The translations under genes were made by a program, and so were the position numbers. Shown here piece by piece: positions 28,551 through 59,586 of a stretch of 64,000 nt of DNA. The notes under the pieces were generated by a model. It saw only the letters and a list, made by a program, of their open reading frames with translations. It made no database searches and was not told the DNA's origin. How positions within the stretch are numbered: position 1 is the stretch's first letter; the number at the start of each line of letters is the position of its first letter. The stretch is from Antechinus flavipes (lineage: Eukaryota). Location: positions 257,052,001-257,116,000 of the forward strand of contig NC_067403.1 of NCBI RefSeq assembly GCF_016432865.1, written 5' to 3'.

Positions 28551-30439
28551 AGCGGTTGTTACTAGGCAAGATCTTAGAGCGTGGTATTTCTGCTGCAAAT
28601 CAGGTAGAAAAGTCCCATGTTCCTTTGGGTGCGAAGCAAGTGATGATACCTGTTCCTTAGTGTTCTTTCCACTGATGAAATCATATCAACTTCTCTTTTA
28701 CTTTTTAAATTCATTTAAAGTTTTTGAGTTCCAAATTCTCTCCTTCTTTCCTGCCTTTCCCTCAGTTATTAAGGAGGCAACAATATTTTATCCATTTTAT
28801 ATGTGAAGTTTTGCAAAACCTATTTCCATATTAACCGTCCTCTCGGTTGTCATAAAGTCCCAAGCTTAGTCCGATGGTCTAACATTAGAAACTGATAGGA
28901 TGGTTAATGCTGTGGCACCTTGACAAGAAGGAGCGGTTCCCAGGTGATTCTCACAGGGGCTGCCCCGAGTGGTTGGCGGAGGGCACCGGACTTGAGCCCT
29001 GCTCCGGGTCTCGGGCTCAGACTATCAGATCATCAGGTCTATGATGAATGTGAGTCACCCCTGACAGAAAGGAGACGGACCCAAGTCCAGAAGCAGACAT
29101 TCATTTTGGCCATTTGGTGGATTTGTTTTGCCTGCCTATGTTTATTTCCAAGAAAGGTTTGGCTTTTTTTTTTTTTTTTTCTCTCATGGTTTTTCACTAG
29201 AGGACAGGGAAGGGATTCACAATAATGATGTCAGAGAAAAGAGGACCACCACTGAGACCTTTAAAAAAAAATGCAGCGAAGAGAACAGAAGGGAGCACAG
29301 ACTGCAGGATAGTTTTGAAAAAAACATGAATTATTGAAAAACCGAGAGGTCTGAAGTAGAAACTCATGGTTTACATGTGATTCTCTTATGTGCTACTGAA
29401 TATGAAAATGCTTTTTTTGTGAATATGGTAAATAAGGAAACCTCTTCTTGAATTGAAATCTGGCCTCAGATACTTGCTAGCTGTGTGACTCTGGGCCAGT
29501 CACTTCACTCTGCCTCAGTTTCCTCATCTGTCAAATGGGCGGGAGAAGGAAATGGCAAACTCCAGTCTCCCTGCCAAGAAAATCCCCAGTGAGGTCATAA
29601 AGAGCCAGCCACCTGATACGACTAGAATTTCCACACCCAAGCTAGGAATCCAGAGGGAGCCCCAGACTTGGGAGTCTTTGTCCAGAACAGAACTCATTAT
29701 CTTTCCTTTTACGTCCACCCTTCCTCCCCCTTTCCCTTGGAGGCCCCACTGGGTCTGAGTCATCCAGGATGGCGTCTACCATTCCTCCCCGCCTTTATTC
29801 TCCTCCTCCCCTCTCCCAGCCAGGGACCGGTTGCTGCTGTTCCCCTCCCCCAACAGCTCCTTCACCCGTGTCCTCCTATGACCATCAGCCATTACTTCCC
29901 ACTTGATCTACGGCAATAGCCTCTTAATTGAGCTTCTTGCCACAAAAGCTGCTTATATTACCCTCCCACTCAGTAAACTATCTCGAGGTGGGCAGGCCTT
30001 CAGAGCGGGCCAGCAGCTAATTGCCGAGGCCAGGGGCCAGGGGTCAGGCACCTTGGAGCCTTGGCAAGGGGTGGGGGGGGGTGGGCAGGGGAGGCTGTCC
30101 CTGCCTGGTATGGGCACTGCCAGGGCTTGGTGGGACGCAGTCCGCCCTGAGGCCATAGCGATAGGAGAGGGACTTCCAGGCCACTGGTGCTTGATGTTCC
30201 CTGCCCATAATGGGCAACAGCAGCCCTGTCCAGGCCTTGGGGTGCTCCTGACCAGTCCATTATCATTCCTGGATAATGCCCACTCCCAGCAGCCCTCACG
30301 AGTCCTGGACCGGTGCTAGAAGCAGGGGCAGGTGGGTGCTCCCAGGGCAGCTGTGGGAGAAAGGCCTGGGGCACAGTCCAGCCCTCCAAGACCCAGAAGT
30401 CTGGGGGAATTCAGGAGGAGAGTGACCTGAGCCCAGCAG

Positions 30440-30762
30440 CAGGGGGAGCCCCTCAGACAGAGCCTACAGGGAGAGAGAGGCCCCAGAGAAGGGGGGTAAC
30501 GGGGACCCCAGGAGAGCCCAGTGCAGGGGGTGCCCCTCAGAGCCTACAGGGAGGAAGAGGCCCCAGAGAAGGGGGGTAACGGGGACCCCAGGAGAGCCCA
30601 GCGCAGGGGGAGCCCCTCAGAGCCCAAAGGGAGGAAGAGGCCCCAGAGAAGGGGGATAATGGGGACCCCAGGAGAACCCAGCGCAGGGGGAGCCCCTCAG
30701 AGCCCAAAGGGAGGAAGAGGCCCCAGAGAAGGGGGATAATGGGGACCCCAGGAGAGCCCAGC
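30440..30762. repeat. 80-bp minisatellite, 4 copies
   Basis: CCCCAGAGAAGGGGG recurs at 30481, 30561, 30641 and 30721. Confidence 0.95.
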
Positions 30763-39269: not shown

Positions 39270-39860
39270 TTAGTGCTAGGAGAGGAGGGAGGAAAGGGGA
39301 GAGAAAAGAAAGGAAGGAAGAACGGAGGGAGGCGGGGAGGGGAAGGGAAGAAGTAAATGGAAAGGAAGGAAGGAAAGAAGGAGGAAGGAAAAAAGGGAGA
39401 GAGGAAGGGGAGAANNNNNNNNNNNNNNNNNNNNNNNNNNNNNNNNNNNNNNNNNNNNNNNNNNNNNNNNNNNNNNNNNNNNNNNNNNNNNNNNNNNNNN
39501 NNNNNNNNNNNNNNNNNNNNNNNNNNNNNNNNNNNNNNNNNNNNNNNNNNNNNNNNNNNNNNNNNNNNNNNNNNGAGAGAGGGAAAAGGAAGGAAATTAA
39601 GGAAAGANNNNNNNNNNNNNNNNNNNNNNNNNNNNNNNNNNNNNNNNNNNNNNNNNNNNNNNNNNNNNNNNNNNNNNNNNNNNNNNNNNNNNNNNNNNNN
39701 NNNNNNNNNNNNNNNNNNNNNNNNNNNNNNNNNNNNNNNNNNNNNNGAGAGAGAGGGAAAAGGAAGGAAATAGATGGAAATTAAGGAAAGGGAAGGAAGA
39801 AACACAAGGAGGAAAGGAAGGGAAGAAGGAGGAAGAAAGGAGGGAGAGGAAAGAAAGGGC
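39270..39860. repeat. Polypurine tract with two N gaps or masks (39415-39574, 39608-39746)
   Basis: Direct reading. Confidence 0.9.
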
Positions 39861-40427
39861 AGAAACCAGCATTTATTGTGTACTCTGGGCCAGTCACTGT
39901 GCTAACACAATATTAGCTCCTTTATCTGCTCAACAACCTTGGGAAGCAGATGCTGTGATTGTTCCCATTTTGCAGCGGAGGACACTGAGGCAGACAGCAG
40001 TTAAGTCATTTGCCTGGGATCACACAGCTAATAAGGGGCTGAATTTGAACTTAGGGCAAGCCGTCTATACAGGACACCTCTGGCGGAACGACTAGGACTG
40101 CCCTTGGGATCAAGAGGGCTGGGTTGGGATCTCAGCTCTGGTCCTTCCTGGTTGTGGGACGTGGACAAGTCGGAAGTTCTCTGAGCCTCAGTGTTCTCAT
40201 CTGTGAAATGGGGAGAGGGCAGCTGGGGGCGAGGGGGAGGGGCGGTGGTGGTCAGGGCTCCCTTTGACCTGGAGCTCGCTGTGGTTTGCACTTTGGAGCT
40301 TCAGCCGCTCCAACCTTTGGTCCCTCGTCACCTGGCGGCTGGGTGTGGACTCCCCCGGCCGAGCAGCGGCAGCTCCGGGTACTTAGGAGAGAGCCGGGCC
40401 CCGGGCTGGTCATTCCCCGCCGCGGCC

Positions 40428-40742
40428 ATGGTGACCACTCGGAGCCAGTCCCTCAGGCTCCCCCGGGCCTCCTATAACAAACTCCAGGACGCGTGGGGGG
40501 ATCGCTCAGAACGCAAGGGGCTGAGCCCCCTCGTCCCCCAGGGCCGCCAGCAGGGCCCCCGCTTCCAGAGGTCCCTCAGCCTCCGGCCCCGGAGAGAAAA
40601 GCGGCCGCCGGAAGCCAGCGGGGGCCTCCCCGAGGGCGGGGACTCCCCTCCTCCCGACGGCGCTGCCGGGAACCCCGGGGACACGGAGCAGCTGATCCAA
40701 GGCAAGGCTCGGGGGAGGCAGCGAATGCACCAGTATAAGAAG
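40428..40742 (+). CDS. Coding exon 1 (105 codons) of a predicted two-exon gene, C1orf115/RDD1 (DUF4710)-like
   Basis: Strong Kozak GCCGCGGCCATGG, open frame MVTTRSQSLRLPRASYNKLQD...RGRQRMHQYKK, perfect phase-0 donor AAG|GTAAGT, inside a CpG island. Confidence 0.7.
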
Positions 40743-41516
40743 GTAAGTGATGGGGGCTGGGAGGAGGGAGGCTGGGAAGGGCCCCGGCCGCCCTCCTGAG
40801 CCAGGCCCTAAGACAGAGACCCAGAGCTGGGCCGTGTCTGGTCCCGAGCCAGATCTGGCCACGGCCCCATGAGTCTGGAGGGGAAAGTGAGGCGGGCGAC
40901 CTTGCCCAGCCCTCCCTCATTTAACTCCACTTCACTTGCCTGATCTCTGACATCAGGGCCCTCCCAGAATGAAGGATAAACAAAGTTTCCGTCCGTAAAA
41001 TGGGAACGATAAGGCTTCGAGGGTCTCCTTCCCTGGGCTGCCCCCCAGAATCCCTCAGCGCTCTGGACGAAGCTTCCCATAAGCCGAGCAAGCGTCCTCC
41101 CATTTCACAGCTGAATACACTGAGGCTAGGCGACGGGGCAGACCCCAGAGAATTCCGTCTGTGAATGGGATCCCTGTGGCTGTCGTTCTGGTTTGGGGGG
41201 AGCGCTGCCTGATTCCTCATCGGGGGCCCTCACGGCTTCATTCCCAGCGCTTGCGGGGGCTTTCCCTGAGGACCTCCTTCCCCGGAGCATCCTGGGACTC
41301 TGGAGGGGGCGTCCTGGAGACCCAGAGTGGCCGGGCGGCCAGCAGCACAGCCGGCGTCCCCAGGGCCCGGGGCTGGAAGGGGGAAGGGGCGACGGAGCTA
41401 GCTGACATCCCCGGCCGAGCTGGGACGGGAGGCGGGGCAAGGGCTGCTAGGGCTCAGCCGTCCCCCCGGGACACAATTCCTCCCCACTGACCGTCTTCTG
41501 CCTCTCTGGCCCCCAG

Positions 41517-41627
41517 CAGGTGGATCATGCCCTGAGAAGAACGTGGGGGAGCTTCGTGGCCAACCTCCCGGGGGTGACCCTCAGCCGCTCGGCCCCGCCC
41601 GGCCCCGCCCAGGACTCTGCCAGCTGA
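41517..41627 (+). CDS. Coding exon 2 of the same gene: (Q)VDHALRRTWGSFVANLPGVTLSRSAPPGPAQDSAS*
   Basis: Branch point CACTGAC (~41485-41491), pyrimidine tract, tandem CAG CAG acceptor. Both acceptors are in frame with exon 1. TGA at 41625-41627. Confidence 0.7.
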   Translation, partial: QVDHALRRTWGSFVANLPGVTLSRSAPPGPAQDSAS

Positions 41628-42650: not shown

Positions 42651-42656
42651 AATAAA
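42651..42656 (+). terminator. Candidate poly(A) signal of the two-exon gene
   Basis: AATAAA followed about 20 nt later by GU-rich GTGTCTCGTT. AU-rich TTTTATTTATAATTTA in the putative 3' UTR near 41745. A second AATAAA near 42349 lies in an L2/MIR-type tail. Confidence 0.5.
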
Positions 42657-42835
42657 GGCCCGATGCTGCTCCGAGGTGTCTCGTTCAGAGGCCGCCGCCC
42701 GCCCCCTTCTTCCTCTGGCCCATCTCCCCTCCCTTTTCCCCCGGAGAGGACATGGCGACTGAAATGGGGAGAGGGAGACTGAGGGAGGGGGGAACGGGAT
42801 GGAAGGCGGGGATGGGGAGACGTTCAGCATTTCTT

Positions 42836-42850
42836 CCACCAGAGGGTGCC
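42836..42850 (+). promoter_or_regulatory. CTCF-like motif, forward orientation
   Basis: CCACCAGAGGGTGCC, one mismatch from CCACCAGAGGGCGCC. Confidence 0.5.
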
Positions 42851-43096
42851 CACTGGCCAGCAGCAGAGCCATCCTTCCAAAGGGGCGGGTCCCTGAGATT
42901 GGAGAGGAAGGAGAGGGGGCCGCAGCCAAGCTGGCTCCCCGAGCCCTTTCCCCGGGACCCTCTCGTGCCTCCGAATCCCGAAACATCAGCAATGAAACCC
43001 TTTCACTTCCCAAAGTGAAGCATGATGGTAGCAGGAGCCCCGGACTGGCCGGCAGCATTCTGAGGTGCCCTCTGGCCCGCCCAGCCTGCATGGCCT

Positions 43097-46000
43097 GTGA
43101 CCTGGACAAATAATCATTTCGGGCTGGGGGGGACTTTGCTATTGACCTTGACAAATACTTGTTTTGGACTGGGGGGATTTTGTTAGTGACCTTGAAAAAC
43201 AACTGTTTGGGGCTGGGGGGGAACGACTTTGTTAGTGACCTTGACAAATAAACATTTTGGACTGGGGGGGACTTTGTTATTGACCTTGACAAACAACTGT
43301 TTTGGGCTGGGAGGACTTTATTAGTGACCTTGACAAATACTTATTTTGAACTGGGGGGACATTGTTAGTGACCTTGACAAATAACATTTTGGACTGGGGG
43401 GACTTTGTTATCGACCTTGACAAACAACTGTTTTGGGCTGGGGGTGACTTTGCTAGTGACCTTGATAAATAACTGTTTTGGATTGGAGATGATTTTGCTA
43501 TTGACCTTGAAAAACAACTGTTTGGGGCTAGGGGGACTTTATTAGTGACCTTGAAAAATACTTATTTTGAAGTGGGGGGACATTGTTAGTGATCTTCACA
43601 AATAAACATTTTGGGCTGGGAGGGACTTTGTTAGTGACCTTGACAAATAACTGTTTGGGGCTGGGAGGGGATGACTTTGTTAGTGACCTTGACAAATAAC
43701 ATTTTGGACTGGGGGGGACTTTGTTATTGACCTTGACAAACAACTGTTTTGGGCTGGGGGTGACTTTGCTAGTGACCTTGATAAATAACTGTTTTGGATT
43801 GGAGATGATTTTGCTATTGACCTTGAAAAACAACTGTTTGGGGCTAGGGGGACTTTATTAGTGACCTTGACAAATACTTATTTTGAACTGGGGGGACATT
43901 GTTAGTGACCTTGACAAATAAACATTTTGGGCTGGGAGGGACTTTGTTAGTGACCTTGAAAAACAACTGTTTGGGGCTGGGAGGGGATGACTTTGTTAGT
44001 GACCTTGACAAATAACATTTTGGACTGGGGGGAGTTTGTTATTGACCTTGACAAACAACTGTTTTGGGCTGGGGGGTGACTTTGCTAGTGACCTTGATAA
44101 ATAACTGTTTTGGATTGGAGATGATTTTGCTATTGACCTTGAAAAACAACTGGGGCTAGGGGGACTTTATTAGTGACCTTGACAAATACTTATTTTGAAC
44201 TGGGGGGACATTGTTAGTGACCTTGACAAATAAACATTTTGGGCTGGGAGGGACTTTGTTAGTGACCTTGACAAATAACTATTTTGGGCTGGGGGGAGGG
44301 GACTTTGTTAGTGACCTTGACAAACAACTGTTTTGGGCTGGGGGGAACTTTGTTAGTGACCTTGAAAAACAACTGTTTGGGGCTGGGAGGGGATGACTTT
44401 GTTAGTGACCTTGACAAATAACATTTTGGACTGGGGGGGACTTTGTTATTGACCTTGACAAACAACTGTTTTGGGCTGGGGGTGACTTTGCTAGTGACCT
44501 TGATAAACAACTGTTTTGGATTGGAGATGATTTTGCTATTGACCTTGAAAAACAACTGTTTGGGGCTAGGGGGACTTTATTAGTGACCTTGACAAATACT
44601 TATTTTGAAGTGGGGGGACATTGTTAGTGACCTTGACAAATAAACATTTTGGGCTGGGAGGGACTTTGTTAGTGACCTTGACAAATAACTATTTTGGGCT
44701 GGGGGGAGGGGACTTTGTTAGTGACCTTGACAAACAACTGTTTTGGGCTGGGGGGAACTTTGTTAGTGACCTTGAAAAACAACTGTTTGGGGCTGGGAGG
44801 GGATGACTTTGTTAGTGACCTTGACAAATAACATTTTGGACTGGGGGGACTTTGTTAGTGACCTTGACAAACAACTGTTTTGGGCTGGGGGGACTTTATT
44901 AGTGACCTTGACAAACAACTGTTTTGGGCTGGGGGGAGGGGACTTTGTTAGTGACCTTGACAAACAACTGTTTTGGGCTGGGGGGAGGGGACTTTGTTAG
45001 TGACCTTGACAAACAACTGTTTTGGGCTGGGAGGGACTTTGTTAGTGACCTTGACAAATAACTATTTTGGGCTGGGGGGAGGGACTTTGTTAGTGACCTT
45101 GACAAACAACTGTTTTGGGCTGGGGGGAACTTTGTTAGTGACCTTGAAAAACAACTGTTTGGGGCTGGGAGGGGATGACTTTGTTAGTGACCTTGACAAA
45201 TAACATTTTGGACTGGGGGGACTTTGTTAGTGACCTTGACAAACAACTGTTTTGGGCTGGGGGGAGGGACTTTGTTAGTGACCTTGACAAACAACTGTTT
45301 TGGGCTGGGGGGAGGGGACTTTGTTAGTGACCCTGACAAACAACTGTTTTGGGCTGGGGGGAGGGGACTTTGTTAGTGACCTTGACAAACAACTGTTTTG
45401 GGCTGGGGGGAGGGACTTTGTTAGTGACCTTGACAAACAACTGTTTTGGGCTGGGAGGGACTTTGTTAGTGACCTTGACAAATAACTATTTTGGGCTGGG
45501 GGGAGGGGACTTTGTTAGTGACCTTGACAAACAACTGTTTTGGGTTGGGGAAACTTTGTTAGTGACCTTGAAAAACAACTGTTTGGGGCTGGGAGGGGAT
45601 GACTTTGTTAGTGACCTTGACAATAACATTTTGGACTGGGGGGACTTTGTTATTGACCTTGACAAACAACTGTTTTGGGCTGGGGGGGTGACTTTGCTAG
45701 TGACCTTGATAAATAACTGTTTTGGATTGGAGATGATTTTGCTATTGACCTTGAAAAACAACTGTTTGGGGCTAGGGGGACTTTATTAGTGACCTTGACA
45801 AATACTTATTTTGAAGTGGGGGGACATTGTTAGTGATCTTGACAAATAAACATTTTGGGCTGGGAGGGACTTTGTTAGTGACCTTGACAAATAACTGTTT
45901 GGGGCTGGGAGGGGATGACTTTGTTAGTGACCTTGACAAATAACATTTTGGACTGGGGGGACTTTGTTATTGACCTTGACAAACAACTGTTTTGGGCTGG

Positions 46001-49000
46001 GGGATGACTTTGCTAGTGACCTTGATAAATAACTGTTTTGGATTGGAGATGATTTTGCTATTGACCTTGAAAAACAACTGTTTGGGGCTAGGGGGACTTT
46101 ATTAGTGACCTTGACAAATACTTATTTTGAAGTGGGGGGACATTATTAGTGATCTTGACAAATAAACATTTTGGGCTGGGAGGGACTTTGTTAGTGACCT
46201 TGACAAATAACTGTTTGGGGCTGGGAGGGGATGACTTTGTTAGTGACCTTGACAAATAACATTTTGGACTGGGGGGACTTTGTTATTGACCTTGACAAAC
46301 AACTGTTTTGGGCTGGGGGATGACTTTGCTAGTGACCTTGATAAATAACTGTTTTGGATTGGAGATGATTTTGCTATTGACCTTGAAAAACAACTGTTTG
46401 GGGCTAGGGGGACTTTATTAGTGACCTTGACAAATACTTATTTTGAAGTGGGGGGACATTGTTAGTGACCTTGACAAATAAACATTTTGGGCTGGGAGGG
46501 ACTTTGTTAGTGACCTTGAAAAACAACTGTTTGGGGCTGGGAGAGGATGACTTTGTTAGTGACCTTGACAAATAACATTTTGGACTGGGGGGGACTTTGT
46601 TAGTGACCTTGAAAAACAACTGTTTGGGGCTGGGAGGGGATGACTTTGTTAGTGACCTTGACAAATAACATTTTGGACTGGGGGGACTTTGTTAGTGACC
46701 TTGACAAACAACTGTTTTGGGCTGGGGGGAGGGGACTTTGTTAGTGACCTTGACAAACAACTGTTTTGGGCTAGGGGGACTTTATTAGTGACCTTGACAA
46801 ATAGTTATTTTGGACAGGGGGGACTTTGTTAGTGACCTTGAAAAACAACCGTTTTGGGCTGGGGGTTGGGGAGACTTTGTTATTGACCTTGACAAATAAA
46901 CATTTTGGGCTGGTGGAGACTTTGTTATTGACCTTGACAAATAAACATTTTGGGCTGGGGGGATGACTTTGTTAGTGACCTTGAAAAATAACTGTTTGGG
47001 GCTAGAGGACTTTATTAGTGACCTTGACAAATACTTATTTTGGACTGGGGGGACTTTGTTAGTGACCTTGACAAATAAACATTTTGGGCTGGGGGGATGA
47101 CTTTGTTAGTGACCTTGACAAACATTTTGGACTGGGGGGACTTTGTTAGTGACCTTGACAAATACTTATTTTGGACTGGGGGACTTTGTTAGTGACCTTG
47201 AAAAACAACCGTTTTGGGCTGGGGGTTGGGGAGACTTTGTTATTGACCTTGACAAATAAACATTTTGGGCTGGTGGAGACTTTGTTATTGACCTTGACAA
47301 ATAAACATTTTGGGCTGGGGGGATGACTTTGTTAGTGACCTTGACAAACATTTTGGACCGGGGGGACTTTGTTAGTGACCTTGACAAATACTTATTTTGG
47401 ACTGGGAGGACTTTGTTAGTGACCTTGACAAATAAACATTTTGGACTGGGGGGAGGGGATTTTGTTAGTGACCTTGACAAACAACGGTTTTGGATTGAAG
47501 ATGACTTTGCCATTGACCTTGACAAACAACTGTTTCGGGCTGGGGGAACTTTGTTAGTGACTTTGACAAATACTTATTTTGGACTGGGGGGACTTTGTTA
47601 GTGACCTTGACAAATAAACATTTTGGGCTGGGGGGATGACTTTGTTAGTGACCTTGACAAACAACTGTTTTGGGCTGGGGGTGACTTTGCTATTGACCTT
47701 GACAAACAACTGTTTTGGGCTGGGGGGGACTTTGTTAGTGACCTTGACAAACAACTGTTTGGGGCTGGGAGAGGATGACTTTGTTAGTGACCTTGACAAA
47801 TAAACATTTTGGACTGGGGGGACTTTGTTAGTGACCTTGACAAATACTTATTTTGGACTAGGAGGACTTTGTTAGTGACCTTGACAAATAAACATTTTGG
47901 ACTGGGGGGACTTTGTTAGTGACCTTGACAAATACTTATTTTGGACTAGGAGGACTTTGTTAGTGACCTTGACAAATAAACATTTTGGACTGGGGGGATG
48001 ACTTTGTTAGTGACCTTGACAAACATTTTGGACGGGGGGACTTTGTTATTGACCTTGACAAATACTTATTTTGGACTGGGAGGACTTTGTTAGTGACCTT
48101 GACAAATACTTATTTTGAACTAGGAGGACTTTGTTAGTGACCTTGACAAATACTTATTTTGGACTGGGGTGGGGACTTTGTTAGTGACCTTGACAAATAA
48201 CATTTTGGACTGGGGGGGGGACTTTGTTAGTGACCTTGACAAATAAACATTTTGGGTTGGGGGGGACTTTGTTAGTGACCTTGACAAATACTTATTTTGG
48301 ACTAGGAGGTCTTTGTTAGTAACCTTGACAAATAAACATTTTGGACTGGGGGGATGACTTTGTTAGTGACCTTGACAAACATTTTGGACCGGGGGGACTT
48401 TGTTATTGACCTTGACAAATACTTATTTTGGACTGGGAGGACTTTGTTAGTGACCTTGACAAATACTTATTTTGAACTAGGAGGACTTTGTTAGTGACCT
48501 TGACAAATACTTATTTTGGACTGGGGTGGGGACTTTGTTAGTGACCTTGACAAATAACATTTTGGACTGGGGGGGGACTTTGTTAGTGACCTTGACAAAT
48601 AAACATTTTGGGTTGGGGGGGACTTTGTTAGTGACCTTGACAAATACTTATTTTGGACTAGGAGGTCTTTGTTAGTGACCTTGACAAATAAACATTTTGG
48701 GCTGGGGGGATGACTTTGTTAGTGACCTTGAAAAATAACTGTTTGGGGCTAGAGGACTTTATTAGTGACCTTGACAAATACTTATTTTGGACTGGGGGGA
48801 CTTGTTAGTGACCTTGACAAATAAACATTTTGGGCTGGGGGGATGACTTTGTTAGTGACCTTGACAAACATTTTGGACTGGGGGGACTTTGTTAGTGACC
48901 TTGACAAATACTTATTTTGGACTGGGGGATTTTGTTAGTGACCTTGAAAAACAACCGTTTTGGGCTGGGGGTTGGGGAGACTTTGTTATTGACCTTGACA

Positions 49001-50647
49001 AATAAACATTTTGGGCTGGTGGAGACTTTGTTATTGACCTTGACAAATAAACATTTTGGGCTGGGGGGATGACTTTGTTAGTGACCTTGACAAACATTTT
49101 GGACTGGGGGGACTTTGTTAGTGACCTTGACAAATACTTATTTTGGACTGGGGGATTTTGTTAGTGACCTTGAAAAACAACCGTTTTGGGCTGGGGGTTG
49201 GGGAGACTTTGTTATTGACCTTGACAAATAAACATTTTGGGCTGGTGGAGACTTTGTTATTGACCTTGACAAATAAACATTTTGGGCTGGGGGGATGACT
49301 TTGTTAGTGACCTTGACAAACATTTTGGACCGGGGGGACTTTGTTAGTGACCTTGACAAATACTTATTTTGGACTGGGAGGACTTTGTTAGTGACCTTGA
49401 CAAATAAACATTTTGGACTGGGGGGAGGGGATTTTGTTAGTGACCTTGACAAACAACGGTTTTGGATTGAAGATGACTTTGCCATTGACCTTGACAAACA
49501 ACTGTTTCGGGCTGGGGGAACTTTGTTAGTGACTTTGGCAAATACTTATTTTGGACTGGGGGGACTTTGTTAGTGACCTTGACAAATAAACATTTTGGGC
49601 TGGGGGGATGACTTTGTTAGTGACCTTGACAAACAACTGTTTTGGGCTGGGGGTGACTTTGCTATTGACCTTGACAAACAACTGTTTTGGGCTGGGGGGG
49701 ACTTTGTTAGTGACCTTGACAAACAACTGTTTGGGGCTGGGAGAGGATGACTTTGTTAGGGACCTTGACAAATAAACATTTTTTACTGGGGGGATTTTAT
49801 TAGTGACCTTGACAAATAAACATTTTGGACTGGGGGGAGGGGATTTTGTTAGTTACCTTGACAAATAACTGTTTTGGATTGGAGATGACTTTGCTATTGA
49901 CCTTGACAAACAACTGTTTTGGGCTGGGGGGGGACAACTTTGTTAGTGACCTTGACAAATAAACATTTTGGACTGGGGGGGATGACTTTGTTAGTGACCT
50001 GACAAACAACTGTTTTGGGCTAGGGGGACTTTATTAGTGACCTTGACAAATACTTATTTTGGACTGGGGGGAAATGACTTTGTTAGTGACCTTGACAAAT
50101 ACTTATTTTGGACTGGGGGGACTTTGTTAGTGACCTTGACAAATAAACATTTTGGGCTCGGGGGGGGGGGGGATGACTTTGTTAGTGACCTGACAAACAA
50201 CTGTTTTGGGCTGGGGGGGACTTTGTTAGTGACCTTGACAAACAACTGTTTTGGGCTGGGGGGAACTTTGTTAGTGACCTTGACAAATAACTGTTTGGGG
50301 CTGGGAGGGGATGACTTTGTTAGTGACTTTGACAAATAAACATTTTGGACTGGGGGGACTTTGTTAGTGACCTTGACAAATAACTGTTTTGGACTGGGGG
50401 GAACTTTGTTAGTAACCTTGACAAATAAACATTTTGGGCTGGGGGGATGACTTTGTTAGTGACCTTGACAAATAACTGTTTTGGATTGGAGATGACTTTG
50501 CCATTGACCTTGACAAACAACTGTTTTGGGCTGGGGGGAACTTTGTTAGTGACCTTGAAAAACAACTGTTTGGGGTTGGGGGGGGACGATTTTGTTAGTG
50601 ACCTTGACAAATAAACATTTTGGGCTGGGGTGGGGACTTTGTTAGTG
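43097..50647. repeat. 7.55-kb tandem array of ~43-46-bp monomers (roughly 170 copies) with higher-order repeats
   Basis: Consensus GACTTTGTTAGTGACCTTGA-(C/A)AAA(C/T)NNNN(G/A)TTT-TGG(G/A)CTGGGGG. The marker GATTGGAGATG recurs every 316 bp (43481, 43797, 44113; 45725, 46041, 46357). A segment is duplicated at 1972-bp offset (identical or near-identical ORFs at 47166/49138, 47323/49295, 47554/49526). Confidence 0.97.
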
Positions 50648-51436
50648 CAGGGAAGCCCCTTCCACTGATACATTTTCTGCTGTGTCTGCTGTCCAAGGTA
50701 GGGGGGTAACAGTCGCCATTGGCTCCCATCGCCTCATCACAGCCTCTCTGGCTCAGGAGGGGCCTAGAGATTGGGCCTGGAGCCCGGAACCAGCGCCTCG
50801 CCTTCCTCAATGAGGATGGGCGCGGGATCCCGGCAGCCCTGGCTCTGGAGGGAGCTGATGCTCTGAGGGGAGCCCAGAGAGGCTGATTTCCCTCTTGGAT
50901 TGTCCAAATTTTATTTCTTCTCTTCCCACTCCTTCTCTGGTCTAATGTCATGGAAGCCCAAACATAGCTGCCTCTTTCATAAATATATGTATATTCCAAT
51001 TCCCATATTCACACATATATATTCTATCATTTAACAGGTTTAAGTTTTGAGTCCCAGATTCTCTCCCTTCCTCCCCTCCCCCCATTGAGAAGGCCAGCGC
51101 TGTGAGGCAGAGATTACACATGGAGTCACCTCCTTCCCAAGTGATCCCATCTGAGCTTGTTAAAAACACTGGGAGGGAGGCATCCTGTGCCCATTTTACA
51201 GATGGTGGAACTGAGGAAGACAGAAGTGAATGTGACATCCCTAGCTGCACAGCCGTCCGTAGATGGTGGGTCTTGTTTGAGGAGCAGCCGGGAGGCCCGA
51301 TGGGGTCGAGGCCTGGAAACAGAGGATTTCTGCCAGGAATTTGCCACCAGCAGCTTCTGACCCCGTGCCTCCTCGGCCCAAGAGCTCTCTGCTGCCCAGC
51401 CGCTTTTTCACCTACTTCCCTTCACACGGGACACAT

Positions 51437-51650
51437 AAAGCGTACTAAGTACCCAGCACATAGTAGGTGCTATAGGAGACAATACACGCTTCTACTTCAC
51501 GGGGATCTCGGGGGATAGTATTTATAAAGTACTTAGTGCCTGGCACATAGTAGGTGCTATAGGAGACAATACCTGCTTCTACTTCATAGGAATCTGGGGG
51601 AATAGTATGTAAAGCACTTAGTACCTGGCACATAGTAGGTGCTATACAAA
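51437..51650. repeat. ~86-bp tandem repeat, 2.5 copies, built from an L2/MIR-type tail
   Basis: CACATAGTAGGTGCTATA at 51457, 51544 and 51629. Confidence 0.85.
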
Positions 51651-58297: not shown

Positions 58298-59586
58298 CCC
58301 CCACCACTTAGGACCCCAACACTTAGGGCCCCCAACATTTAGGGCCCCCACTGCTTAGAGTCCCAGTACTTAGGGTCCCCACCATTTAGGGTCCCCACTG
58401 CTTAGGGCCCCCACTGCTTAGTGCCCCCACCACTTAGGGCCCCCACTGCTTAGTGCCCCACTGCTTAGAGCCCCACTGCTTAGTGCCCCCACTGCTTAGA
58501 GTCCCATCACTTAGGGTCCCCACTGCTTAGGGCCCCCACTGCTTAGTGCCCCCACCACTTAGGGCCCCCACTGCTTAGAGCCCCACTGCTTAGTGCCCCC
58601 ACTGCTTAGAGTCCCATCACTTAGGGTCCCCACTGCTTAGGGTGCCCACCGCTTAGGGTCCCCACCACTTAGGGCCCCTACTGCTTAGGGCCCCCACTGC
58701 TTAGGGCCCCCACTGCTTAAAGCCCCACTGCTTAGAGCCCCACTGCTTAGTGCCCCACTGCTTAGTGCCCCACTGCTTAGTGCCCCCACCACTTAGGGCC
58801 CCCACTGCTTAGTGCCCCACTGCTTAGAGCCCCACTGCTTAGTGCCCCCACTGCTTAGAGTCCCATCACTTAGGGTCCCCACTGCTTAGGGCCCCCACTG
58901 CTTAGGGCCCCCACCACTTAGGCCCCCACTGCTTAGAGCCCCACTGCTTAGTGCCCCCACTGCTTAGAGTCCCATCACTTAGGGTCCCCACTGCTTAGGG
59001 TGCCCACCGCTTAGGGTCCCCACCACTTAGGGCCCCTACTGCTTAGGGTCCCCACCACTTAGGGCCCCCACCGCTTAGAGCCCCACTGCTTAGAGCCCCA
59101 CTGCTTAGTGCCCCCACTGCTTAGAGTCCCATCACTTAGGGGCTCCACCACTTAGGGTCCCCACCGCTTAGGGCCCTCACTGCTTAGTGCCCCCACTGCT
59201 TAGTGCCCCCACTGCTTAGTGCCCCCACTGCTTAGAGCCCCACTGCTTAGAGCCCCACCGCTTAGGGCCCTCACTGCTTAGTGCCCCACTGCTTAGTGCC
59301 CCACTGCTTAGAGTCCCACCACTTAGGGTCCCCACTGCTTAGTGCCCCCACTGCTTAGAGTCCCATCACTTAGGGTCCCCACTGCTTAGTGCCCCCACTG
59401 CTTAGAGTCCCATCACTTAGGGTTCCCACCACTTAGGGTCCCCACCGCTTAGTGCCCCCACTGCTTAGAGTCCCATCACTTAGGGTCCCCACCACTTAGG
59501 GTCCCCACCGCTTAGGGCCCTCACTGCTTAGTGCCCCCACTGCTTAGTGCCCCCACTGCTTAGAGTCCCACCACTTAGGGTGCCCA
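58298..59586. repeat. 16-17-bp minisatellite (CCCCCACTGCTTAGGG and variants), about 75-80 copies
   Basis: CTTAG recurs every 16-17 bp followed by GG, TG or AG. A ~358-bp internal duplication (GGTGCCCACC at 58641 and 58999). Confidence 0.97.

Follow-up and report, generated by a model that had tools for sequence, protein, structure and literature searches.

Minisatellites, or VNTRs, that have arisen from transposable-element fragments represent a known general class of tandem repeats. An array found in Antechinus flavipes, within a 64-kb stretch of DNA that was analysed as a whole (the 'window'), is like members of that class in its local head-to-tail expansion, its concerted evolution, its higher-order repeats, and its variation in the length of a homopolymer run. 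It differs from them in its length (7.5 to more than 8.4 kb) and its age (two lineages, at least 17 My), both unusually great for a single-locus array, and in that 85-91% of its units have kept the 9-bp receptor site perfect.

CENP-B box arrays are centromeric, DXZ4 and FIRRE (CTCF-bound macrosatellites) are X-linked, and with these the binding has been demonstrated. As in those systems, one short block of the unit here varies far less than its remainder. The array nevertheless is euchromatic, gene-adjacent, and autosomal, with a predicted nuclear-receptor site. Human ESRRA23, a 23-bp unit present in one to four copies and displaying a dose effect, is similar in being a tandem unit that has an ERR response element and that varies in copy number. 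It is dissimilar in that those one to four copies are found in a promoter, versus approximately 170 copies 3' of an unrelated gene. This polymorphism of the human ESRRA gene receives mention in PMC7084735.

MIR elements have a general enhancer role (PMC4090950). With MIR-derived ESRRB/NR5A2 enhancers, the receptor motif lies in the conserved core-SINE part of MIR, i.e., consensus positions 86-97, with the ESRRB motif preceding that of NR5A2 (PMC12036290). The array's progenitor in turn resembles the MIR core, with the motif its best-conserved block. The known cases, however, are single, dispersed copies in mouse or human cells, whereas here one segment has been tandemly amplified approximately 170 to 195 times at one dasyurine locus, and these are candidate sites. 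Mouse SINE B1/Alu sequences similarly supply a SINE-borne, multi-copy NR5A2-type site, as outlined for zygotic genome activation in a preprint (bioRxiv 10.1101/2022.05.17.492379). The copies described there are retrotransposed genome-wide, with binding shown, unlike predicted sites that are found tandemly in one place.

Literature searches for the motif in a repeat context brought up nothing beyond primer tables and papers on other subjects, and metagenome scans for the unit yielded 0 matches in one case and, in the other, 96 single chance matches with no arrays. What is new here is the identity of the neighbouring gene (FACI), the single-copy state in outgroups, the devil array, birth in place within dasyurines, and a probable MIR-like source.

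The original prediction was of a ~170-copy array, and 166 full monomers plus a terminal GTG indeed are counted upon wraparound alignment against a 44-bp consensus, with higher-order repeats. Tandem Repeats Finder places the bounds at exactly 43097-50647 with a period of 44/45 and 166.1 copies, and also detects a higher-order period of 316 bp (= 7 monomers). By both approaches the monomers run head to tail with a constant period, i.e., they form a tandem-repeat array. Its parts and flanks are as follows:

43000..43096, + strand: 5' flank, orthologous in alignments to the SINE-head-like segment that precedes the koala and Dromiciops single-copy unit
43097..50647, + strand: the array, ~7.5 kb, 166 monomers of 44-45 bp, with predicted half-site TCAAGGTCA on the minus strand per monomer
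43097..44901, + strand: domain 1, a 7-monomer higher-order repeat, as delimited by monomer-to-monomer identity
44858..45562, + strand: domain 2, near-homogeneous monomers, adjacent ones being 96-98% identical
45562..46739, + strand: domain 3, in which the 7-monomer higher-order repeat returns (lag-7 identity 97%)
46744..50647, + strand: domain 4, other monomer types, with lags 5 and 8, as seen by monomer comparison
50645..50647, + strand: terminal GTG, from junctions read in Antechinus, dunnart, koala, and Dromiciops
50648..51040, + strand: 3' flank, continuous with the sequence directly 3' of the dunnart single-copy unit (CAGGGAAGCCCCTTCCAC...)

Antechinus monomers range from 39 to 55 bp (44, 45, and 49 are commonest), with nearly all of that variation found in the G-run, as insertions following consensus positions 29-35. 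The G-run itself is at consensus positions 25-35 and leads into ACTTTGTT at 36-43, then a spacer consisting of A followed by G (81% of monomers) or T (19%), then TGACCTTGA at positions 2-10, and then CAAAYA...TRTTT. That is the order which had been described as fixed: G-run, heptamer, spacer, receptor site, and AAAYA/TRTTT part. The variant CATTGTT, said to occur at one higher-order-repeat position, is found in 8 monomers, all in the same slot of the 7-mer. Monomer 1, of domain 1, is the most diverged and is nearest to the single-copy form, while domain 4 includes an internal duplication of ~2 kb, 44 monomers apart, that spans at least 16 consecutive near-identical monomers. A G-quadruplex reading was dropped, there being a single canonical motif in the 7.5 kb of array.

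The strong excess of G over C on the + strand (skew of 0.35-0.39) might be expected were the array part of an Xist/Rsx-like long non-coding RNA, serving as its repeat domain. Three-monomer folds, however, are no stabler than shuffles on either strand (z = 0.18, -1.14), 36 AATAAA signals are found within the array on the + strand, and no Rfam family was matched upon scanning the window. In addition, the opossum orthologue of FACI is named as being on chromosome 8, making the locus autosomal there. Such an RNA is exceedingly improbable.

The orthologous locus in other marsupials, examination of which had been proposed along with the original prediction, has the array in the Tasmanian devil and one copy each in dunnart, koala, and Dromiciops. 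Those single units are at the collinear position (dunnart, L003 12766-12812; koala, L004 ~13269 on; Dromiciops, L005 ~13016 on) and the single-copy unit is bracketed by GTG...GTG, as read from the Antechinus, dunnart, koala, and Dromiciops junctions. Both Antechinus array junctions run into flanks that are shared with the single-copy species, with flank identity of 88% between Antechinus and devil and of 75-77% between Antechinus and dunnart. In both devil assemblies the same 44-bp repeat starts from the same junction, and the devil array, consisting of at least 195 copies and at least 8.4 kb, extends beyond the end of the locus. As the unit is single-copy in dunnart, koala, and Dromiciops, and as the devil has the same array, its birth was in place on the dasyurine stem. 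The array thus is not 'satellite-built' in the sense of a dispersed satellite, as had been proposed, but expanded in place out of unique sequence. That origin, as read from these alignments, argues for a single locus rather than a dispersed satellite family. The birth of the array is directly readable, with a single copy in three outgroups and amplification in two descendants with the same junctions, which is uncommon for long arrays.

The reading that we favour, and consider quite likely, is of a locus-specific minisatellite, born in place on the dasyurine stem from the core segment of a MIR-type SINE, and evolving concertedly. A 44-45-bp stretch, ~0.45 kb past the FACI/C11orf86 poly(A) site, was duplicated head to tail, and the GTG microhomology which flanks the unit could have seeded the first duplication. 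Amplification took place in stem Dasyurinae, once Sminthopsis had split off but before Antechinus and Sarcophilus had separated, ~17-29 Ma. This bracket is based on one sminthopsine and two non-dasyurid outgroups, with split dates from PMC5715987. With one sminthopsine genome compared, loss of an array in dunnart, rather than gain in Dasyurinae, is a formal, less probable alternative. Following gain in Dasyurinae, each lineage has undergone independent turnover, via unequal exchange and segmental duplication, i.e., concerted evolution, and the copy number now stands at 166 in Antechinus and no fewer than 195 in devil.

Concerted evolution is evident in the monomers themselves. Monomers of the same array have a mean identity of 0.861 or 0.810, depending on the array, versus 0.790 for monomers of different arrays, and the nearest neighbour of every monomer is in its own species' array. 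Homogenisation within the array is seen as well in the 316-bp period, a lag-7 identity of 0.97, and the 44-monomer duplication. At five monomer positions the same pair of common alleles is present in both Antechinus and devil, which points to an ancestral array that was already multi-copy. The older devil assembly (L001) has many indels and 46% intact sites, versus 85% in the newer assembly, which likely is assembly noise, and conclusions are not based on that older assembly.

The likeliest source of the progenitor unit is the core of an ancient SINE of MIR type, an origin in which we have fairly good confidence. A SINE profile for nhmmer, built from copies in the window and in the orthologous loci, gave E=5.6e-4 for koala sequence immediately 5' of the unit in a restricted search (0.15 at genome scale), and a weak match to the Dromiciops flank (E=0.2). 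The same profile pairs core-SINE TGTGACCCTGGGCAAGTCA with only the first ~18 bases of the dunnart unit (E=0.39). These koala, Dromiciops, and dunnart matches are all collinear, although across the unit proper the MIR match is weak.

The window holds 151 exact instances of TGACCTTGA, always on the + strand and always inside the array, with 1.05 expected by chance and with no further copies elsewhere in the 64 kb. Its absence from 15 monomers (e.g., TGATCTT, TGACTTT, TAACCTT) compares well with the 'about a dozen' exceptions, among a large majority of intact sites, that had been noted by eye. The reverse complement, TCAAGGTCA, is a perfect extended half-site for receptors of the ERR/NR5A type, as the original prediction held, and the array unit by its sequence would be classed as an ERRE/SFRE (TCAAGGTCA; TNAAGGTCA; YCAAGGYCA). 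With perfect sites this dense, one per 50 bp, the array might be viewed as a transcription-factor 'sink', titrating receptors off other targets. The exact 9-mer, however, is expected approximately once per 131 kb on both strands, or ~25,000 times per 3-Gb genome, to which MIR-derived copies are added. The ~300 array sites per diploid nucleus (~150 per haplotype) by this arithmetic would add roughly 1% to those tens of thousands, leaving the sink, which was one of the roles first suggested, quantitatively very implausible.

Both koala and Dromiciops carry the exact half-site in their single copy, as do 91% of monomers in Antechinus and 85% in devil, while the dunnart single copy has CCAAGGTCA, which matches the NR5A pattern only. 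The predicted receptor site of the progenitor is kept across Australidelphia. Where the unit is single-copy, the site moreover falls within the longest invariant run, GGCCTGTGACCTTG, of the 2.3-kb downstream region (three-species alignment of dunnart, koala, and Dromiciops). As the site was the best-conserved block already when single-copy, its multiplicity is one of copies of a single pre-existing site rather than the assembly of a composite, with each unit having inherited the progenitor's monomeric nuclear-receptor site (TCAAGGTCA, ERR/NR5A type).

A composite is what had been predicted, i.e., that each unit is a module of NR5A/ESRR plus SOX/TCF plus forkhead sites at which cooperating factor pairs are bound side by side. 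Viewed in Antechinus, where 91% of monomers have the receptor site, 69-73% the SOX/TCF-like heptamer (CTTTGWW / CWTTGTT), and 86% the forkhead-like heptamer (RYAAAYA), all in fixed order, such a module would seem sensible. Devil monomers, however, retain the SOX/TCF-like heptamer in just 19-24% of cases and the forkhead-like one in 44% (27% in the older assembly), with common variants at positions 13, 14, 37, and 43. Neither motif occurs in the single copy of koala or of Dromiciops, that of dunnart also lacks the forkhead-like one, and the high-affinity forkhead form TGTTTAC is found in no monomer. Both motifs furthermore are short and A/T-rich, and hence frequent by chance. As these two parts are not conserved across the species compared, the composite reading is largely refuted by the cross-species comparison of sequences, and we view it as very unlikely.

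How well the receptor site has been kept relative to the rest of the monomer was part of the original prediction as well. Antechinus positions 2-10 match the consensus in 97.6-99.4% of cases, diversity is 0.024 in this 'core' 9-mer versus 0.169 over remaining positions, and of all 44 circular 9-bp windows in the Antechinus monomer the core has the lowest diversity. In each of the three arrays examined, likewise, no window shows less diversity than the core. That much of the claim stands. Approximately half of Antechinus monomer positions (23-26 of 44) nevertheless are about as invariant, in terms of having variants under 3%, and the chance of an equally quiet window found anywhere in the Antechinus monomer is P = 0.07-0.10, post hoc, i.e., with the core window having been picked after viewing the Antechinus data.

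Treating devil as a replication of the quiet core gives P = 0.0004 when all changes are counted, or 0.006 with substitutions alone, but this test is not independent, as the Antechinus and devil arrays have a common ancestry and vary at some of the same positions. A devil test restricted strictly to lineage-specific changes falls short of significance (0.795^9 = 0.13, with an alternative estimate of 0.06-0.16). With regard to the kinds of variants, the Antechinus core has 10 rare and 0 common, versus 13 rare and 23 common elsewhere (Fisher P = 0.0006, post hoc). The core, that is, receives rare variants as often as is normal or more often, with none of them having spread, and among 22 lineage-specific variants which have spread since the species split, 0 are in the core. 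These array statistics are suggestive of conservation of the predicted receptor site.

The original prediction placed the array about 450 bp 3' of a gene, and a conserved poly(A) signal indeed is found 446 bp before it. The relevant features are these:

40428..40742, + strand: FACI/C11orf86 exon 1, 105 codons with a GTAAGT donor, as read from sequence, at its end (Pfam DUF4633, E=7.5e-14)
41520..41627, + strand: FACI/C11orf86 exon 2, 35 codons plus stop, as read from sequence
42651..42656, + strand: AATAAA poly(A) signal, after which comes a conserved downstream element, GATGC...GGTGTCT

The translation of exon 1 shows 100% identity with an NCBI protein entitled 'C11orf86 homolog [Antechinus flavipes]', and the two-exon reading, of 140 aa, is a near match to the annotated protein (P0001) of 141 aa. 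No further gene was named by Pfam scans of 20 long open reading frames from other parts of the window. The AATAAA probably marks the 3' end of the FACI mRNA. All five marsupials aligned (Antechinus, devil, dunnart, koala, and Dromiciops) have conserved it, at a distance of 446-483 bp 5' of the unit.

A 'super-enhancer', as was originally suggested, is a class defined by chromatin data (H3K27ac, Mediator, or master-factor load). An enhancer role in a more general sense is possible. If the array does act, then it most likely would do so as a dense platform for the monomer-binding receptors of liver and enterocytes (LRH-1/NR5A2, ERR-alpha), affecting FACI from its 3' side, a prospect that we consider less likely than not. 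Failing that, it is a repeat of variable length that is tolerated and in essence neutral. FACI is a lipid gene of liver and small intestine (PMC10114425), which fits the liver/gut option among the tissues first proposed.

A selected version of this enhancer, in which sites bound by LRH-1/NR5A2 or ERR-alpha in liver or enterocytes make up a copy-number-tunable 3' enhancer of FACI, is somewhat unlikely, and we are equally doubtful that selection would be preserving the 9-mer as the rest of the unit drifts. These ideas draw upon a core that is the least variable window in both species, that is without common variants despite normal input of rare ones, and that has been spared by all 22 spreading lineage-specific variants. 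They draw as well upon the single-copy site's position within the longest invariant run downstream of FACI, upon the tissues in which that gene functions, and upon MIR-core sites being ESRRB-bound enhancers in mouse ES cells (PMC12036290). The unit also is nearly CpG-free (observed/expected 0.05-0.06), such that CpG methylation would not readily be able to silence the array. Against these are the post hoc choice of window, the ancestry and variable positions that the devil test shares with Antechinus, and the lack of significance of the strictly lineage-specific test. Selection on one copy among ~170, in addition, is necessarily very weak, and long tandem arrays often are packaged as silent chromatin.

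Four observations count against full neutrality, these being that the quietest 9-mer is the same in both species, that no core variant has spread, that the array has persisted for at least 17 My in two lineages, and that the progenitor site is conserved across Australidelphia.

In its fullest form the proposal would be that a constrained MIR-core site 3' of FACI became 170-195 perfect LRH-1/ERR sites that have been selected for at least 17 My as a copy-number-tunable enhancer in dasyurine carnivores, which is improbable. If true, then this would be a natural case of enhancer strength being set by tandem-repeat length, for which the laboratory dunnart would be the one-copy control. The ~170-fold multiplication of one conserved site beside a gene in any case is a natural experiment regarding effects on expression, with comparison available between dunnart (1 copy) and devil or antechinus (>160), as well as between array-length alleles within species. 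If the array instead is inert, then it is a well-dated example of a transposon-derived motif that has been multiplied without function, and a caution against taking the motif content of satellites as regulatory evidence.

Between the poly(A) signal and the array there is a further feature:

42836..42850, + strand: CTCF-like motif CCACCAGAGGGTGCC, within a conserved ~60-bp block of the five-species alignment

The likeness of CCACCAGAGGGTGCC to the CTCF consensus was judged by eye, and we take it to be a candidate site. The block in which it resides is among the most conserved 25-column windows of the three-species alignment.

The array lies exactly where the original prediction had placed it, at positions 43097-50647, and is read by Tandem Repeats Finder as a single array of 166 copies with a period of 44/45, along with a higher-order period of 316 bp. 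Monomers were cut by wraparound dynamic-programming alignment to a 44-bp consensus, which favours no unit position; over the whole array this yields 166 full-length monomers and, at the end, a GTG, with monomers mostly 44, 45 or 49 bp in length and the surplus bases found in the G-run. The order of parts within monomers is as predicted, the CATTGTT variant indeed keeps to a single position in the 7-mer higher-order repeat, and exceptions to the core, i.e., the ERR/NR5A-type nuclear-receptor extended half-site at unit positions 2-10, do number a dozen or so. Exact TGACCTTGA occurs 151 times in the window versus 1.05 expected, always on the + strand and only within the array, which divides into four domains:

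Two domains: 7-monomer higher-order repeat
One domain: near-homogeneous block
Domain of other monomer types: 3.9 kb, containing an internal duplication of ~2 kb

How such an array could have arisen is seen upon comparison with the orthologous gene region in fat-tailed dunnart, koala, Dromiciops and, by way of two assemblies, Tasmanian devil. In the devil the 44-bp repeat is also present, with a start junction identical to that of Antechinus, and spans no less than 8.4 kb, with at least 195 monomers, extending past the end of the compared DNA. An artefact of assembly is an improbable alternative, given that three assemblies from two species are concordant as to the array's presence, place and scale. 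Dunnart, koala and Dromiciops each possess exactly one unit, in collinear position, directly abutted by the sequence which in Antechinus lies 3' of the last monomer, and this single unit is flanked by GTG...GTG microhomology. Given that lone collinear unit with the same flank, the array was born in place from unique sequence. The expectation of a 'satellite-built' element thus is not borne out, as amplification was in place, from a unique, probably MIR-derived conserved site.

The two devil assemblies disagree on the array, with 63-66% matches and 16-17% indels in the older (L001, 13005-21361) versus 76-78% and 8-9% in the newer (L002, 12924-21366), and with intact receptor sites at 46% versus 85%. 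Long-array statistics are strongly sensitive to assembly quality.

As to the source of the unit, the koala flank immediately 5' of it resembles the tRNA-related head of a MIR-type SINE, while the unit's start resembles core-SINE. Against a SINE profile built from 20, later 68, copies drawn from the window and the compared loci, the koala head gives E = 5.6e-4 when restricted to progenitor regions (those of the single copies) and 0.15 at the scale of all DNA compared. With progenitor regions only, Dromiciops gives E = 0.2, and for dunnart the unit's opening 18 bases can be aligned to the core, TGTGACCTTG-GCAACTCA versus TGTGACCCTGGGCAAGTCA. Matches to the profile at the progenitor are all collinear and correctly spaced. 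Derivation of the unit from MIR is quite likely, our confidence stopping there because the koala E is only 0.15 at the broader scale. Such an origin is consistent with the literature, in which an ESRRB motif, then NR5A2, lies at MIR consensus positions 86-97, within a conserved core-SINE of 65 bp, and ESRRB-bound copies of MIR act as enhancers in mouse ES cells (PMC12036290; for a general account of MIR-derived enhancers, PMC4090950).

Flank identity is 88% between Antechinus and devil and 75-77% between Antechinus and dunnart. In the accepted tree Antechinus (Phascogalini) and Sarcophilus (Dasyurini) together form Dasyurinae, with Sminthopsis outside, and the flank identities agree with that tree. 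The Dasyurinae-Sminthopsinae split is dated to 20.6-28.6 Ma and crown Dasyurinae to 16.7-22.9 Ma (PMC5715987). The ancestral array probably was multi-copy already, because at five positions the same pair of common alleles is found in both arrays. Mean monomer identity is 0.861 and 0.810 within arrays versus 0.790 between them, every monomer has its nearest neighbour in its own array, and no identical monomers are found between the Antechinus and devil arrays; each array has been homogenised independently following the Antechinus-devil split.

The core was predicted to vary less than the rest of the unit, and among the 44 circular 9-bp windows it has the lowest diversity, both in Antechinus and in each of the two devil assemblies (0.024 vs 0.169 for the rest in Antechinus; 0.046 vs 0.227 in the newer devil assembly). 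Upon position permutation, an equally quiet window arises anywhere in the Antechinus unit with P = 0.07-0.10; for devil, with the window fixed in advance, P = 0.0004 for all changes and 0.006 for substitutions only. The core takes in rare substitution alleles no less often than other positions do, but none there has spread: rare/common counts are 10/0 in the core vs 13/23 elsewhere in Antechinus (Fisher P = 0.0006, post hoc) and 9/0 vs 44/14 in devil (P = 0.19). Of the variants that spread after the species split, 13 in Antechinus plus 9 in devil, the core has none; the arrays have common ancestry and overlap in part as to which positions vary. The devil-only figure is 0.795^9 = 0.13, and conditional tests of core conservation give 0.06-0.6. 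Selection per copy among ~170 must be very weak, and any constraint on the core would have to act via the choice of monomers re-amplified.

Evidence independent of the arrays comes from the 2.3 kb 3' of the gene, aligned among Dromiciops, koala and dunnart with 38% of columns invariant. No invariant run is longer than GGCCTGTGACCTTG, at 14 bp; the next are of 13, 12, 12 and 12. This is the strongest indication that the site was of importance prior to amplification, the receptor-site block being one among several conserved blocks rather than a lone outlier. Special conservation of the receptor site is, taken together, suggestive but not decisive.

Motif content among monomers and single copies is as follows:

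Receptor site TCAAGGTCA: Antechinus 91%, devil 85% of monomers (46% in the older, indel-ridden assembly)
Receptor site, single copies: koala and Dromiciops have the exact site, dunnart CCAAGGTCA
SOX/TCF-like heptamer: Antechinus 69-73%, devil 19-24% of monomers; lacking from koala and Dromiciops single copies
Forkhead-like heptamer: Antechinus 86%, devil 44% of monomers; absent from all three single copies

The proposed composite of nuclear-receptor, SOX and forkhead sites does not hold up, since its SOX/TCF- and forkhead-like parts drop in devil and are missing from two and from all three of the single copies, respectively. Going by these frequencies across species, the fixed composite is a trait of the now-dominant Antechinus monomers and not a conserved design. 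Nor does a factor sink seem apt, the calculated ~300 sites per diploid nucleus being small versus ~25,000 chance 9-mers per 3-Gb genome. The array was considered as well as a structured RNA repeat, for which no support was found.

The gene 5' of the array is FACI (C11orf86):

40191-40799: ORF with a Pfam DUF4633 match
40428-40742: FACI exon 1, 100% identical to NCBI protein 'C11orf86 homolog [Antechinus flavipes]', identifying the genome as that of the yellow-footed antechinus
40428-41627: FACI, two-exon gene, annotated C11orf86/FACI orthologue

This is a gene with existing annotation. FACI, fasting- and CREB-H-induced protein, is abundant in liver and small intestine and has a role in lipid and LDL handling (PMC10114425); C1orf115 is a known structural relative (PMC11757849). 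The predicted placement of the array ~450 bp 3' of the gene is matched by a poly(A) signal at 42651-42656, 446 bp ahead of the array and kept, with its downstream element, in five marsupials; because of that signal, the array is probably positioned just beyond the FACI mRNA's end. Of the functional interpretation, what survives is a nuclear-receptor site that is real, inherited and relatively well kept, next to a gene that suits a liver/gut receptor; the composite and the 'satellite-built' origin do not. The array is best described as a probably transposon-derived minisatellite with a candidate transcription-factor motif, a known type, its interest raised by a readable birth, by being at least 17 My old in two lineages, and by the availability of one-copy control species.

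A CTCF-like motif, CCACCAGAGGGTGCC at 42836-42850 (CCACCAGAGGGCGCC in koala), lies downstream of the FACI poly(A) site and ahead of the array, within a ~60-bp block (~42815-42880) that ranks among the best-conserved stretches when five marsupials are compared; it could be a loop anchor or boundary. Upstream of FACI, a purine-rich low-complexity stretch contains 436 N letters in short runs (~39400-39750). Other repeats are found nearby:

30429-30762: 80-bp G/A-rich repeat in four copies at 93% identity, within sequence of 62% G+C
51442-51646: 87-90-bp unit with MIR 3'-like sequence (…GGCACATAGTAGGTGCT…), 2.4 tandem copies
58298-59563: separate array of a 16-bp unit, CCCCCACTGCTTAGGG, ~80 copies, C-rich on the + strand

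The 87-90-bp tandem is a second SINE-derived duplication, less than 1 kb from the big array, and is expanded to ~6 copies in dunnart (L003 16497-17076), which lacks the big array.
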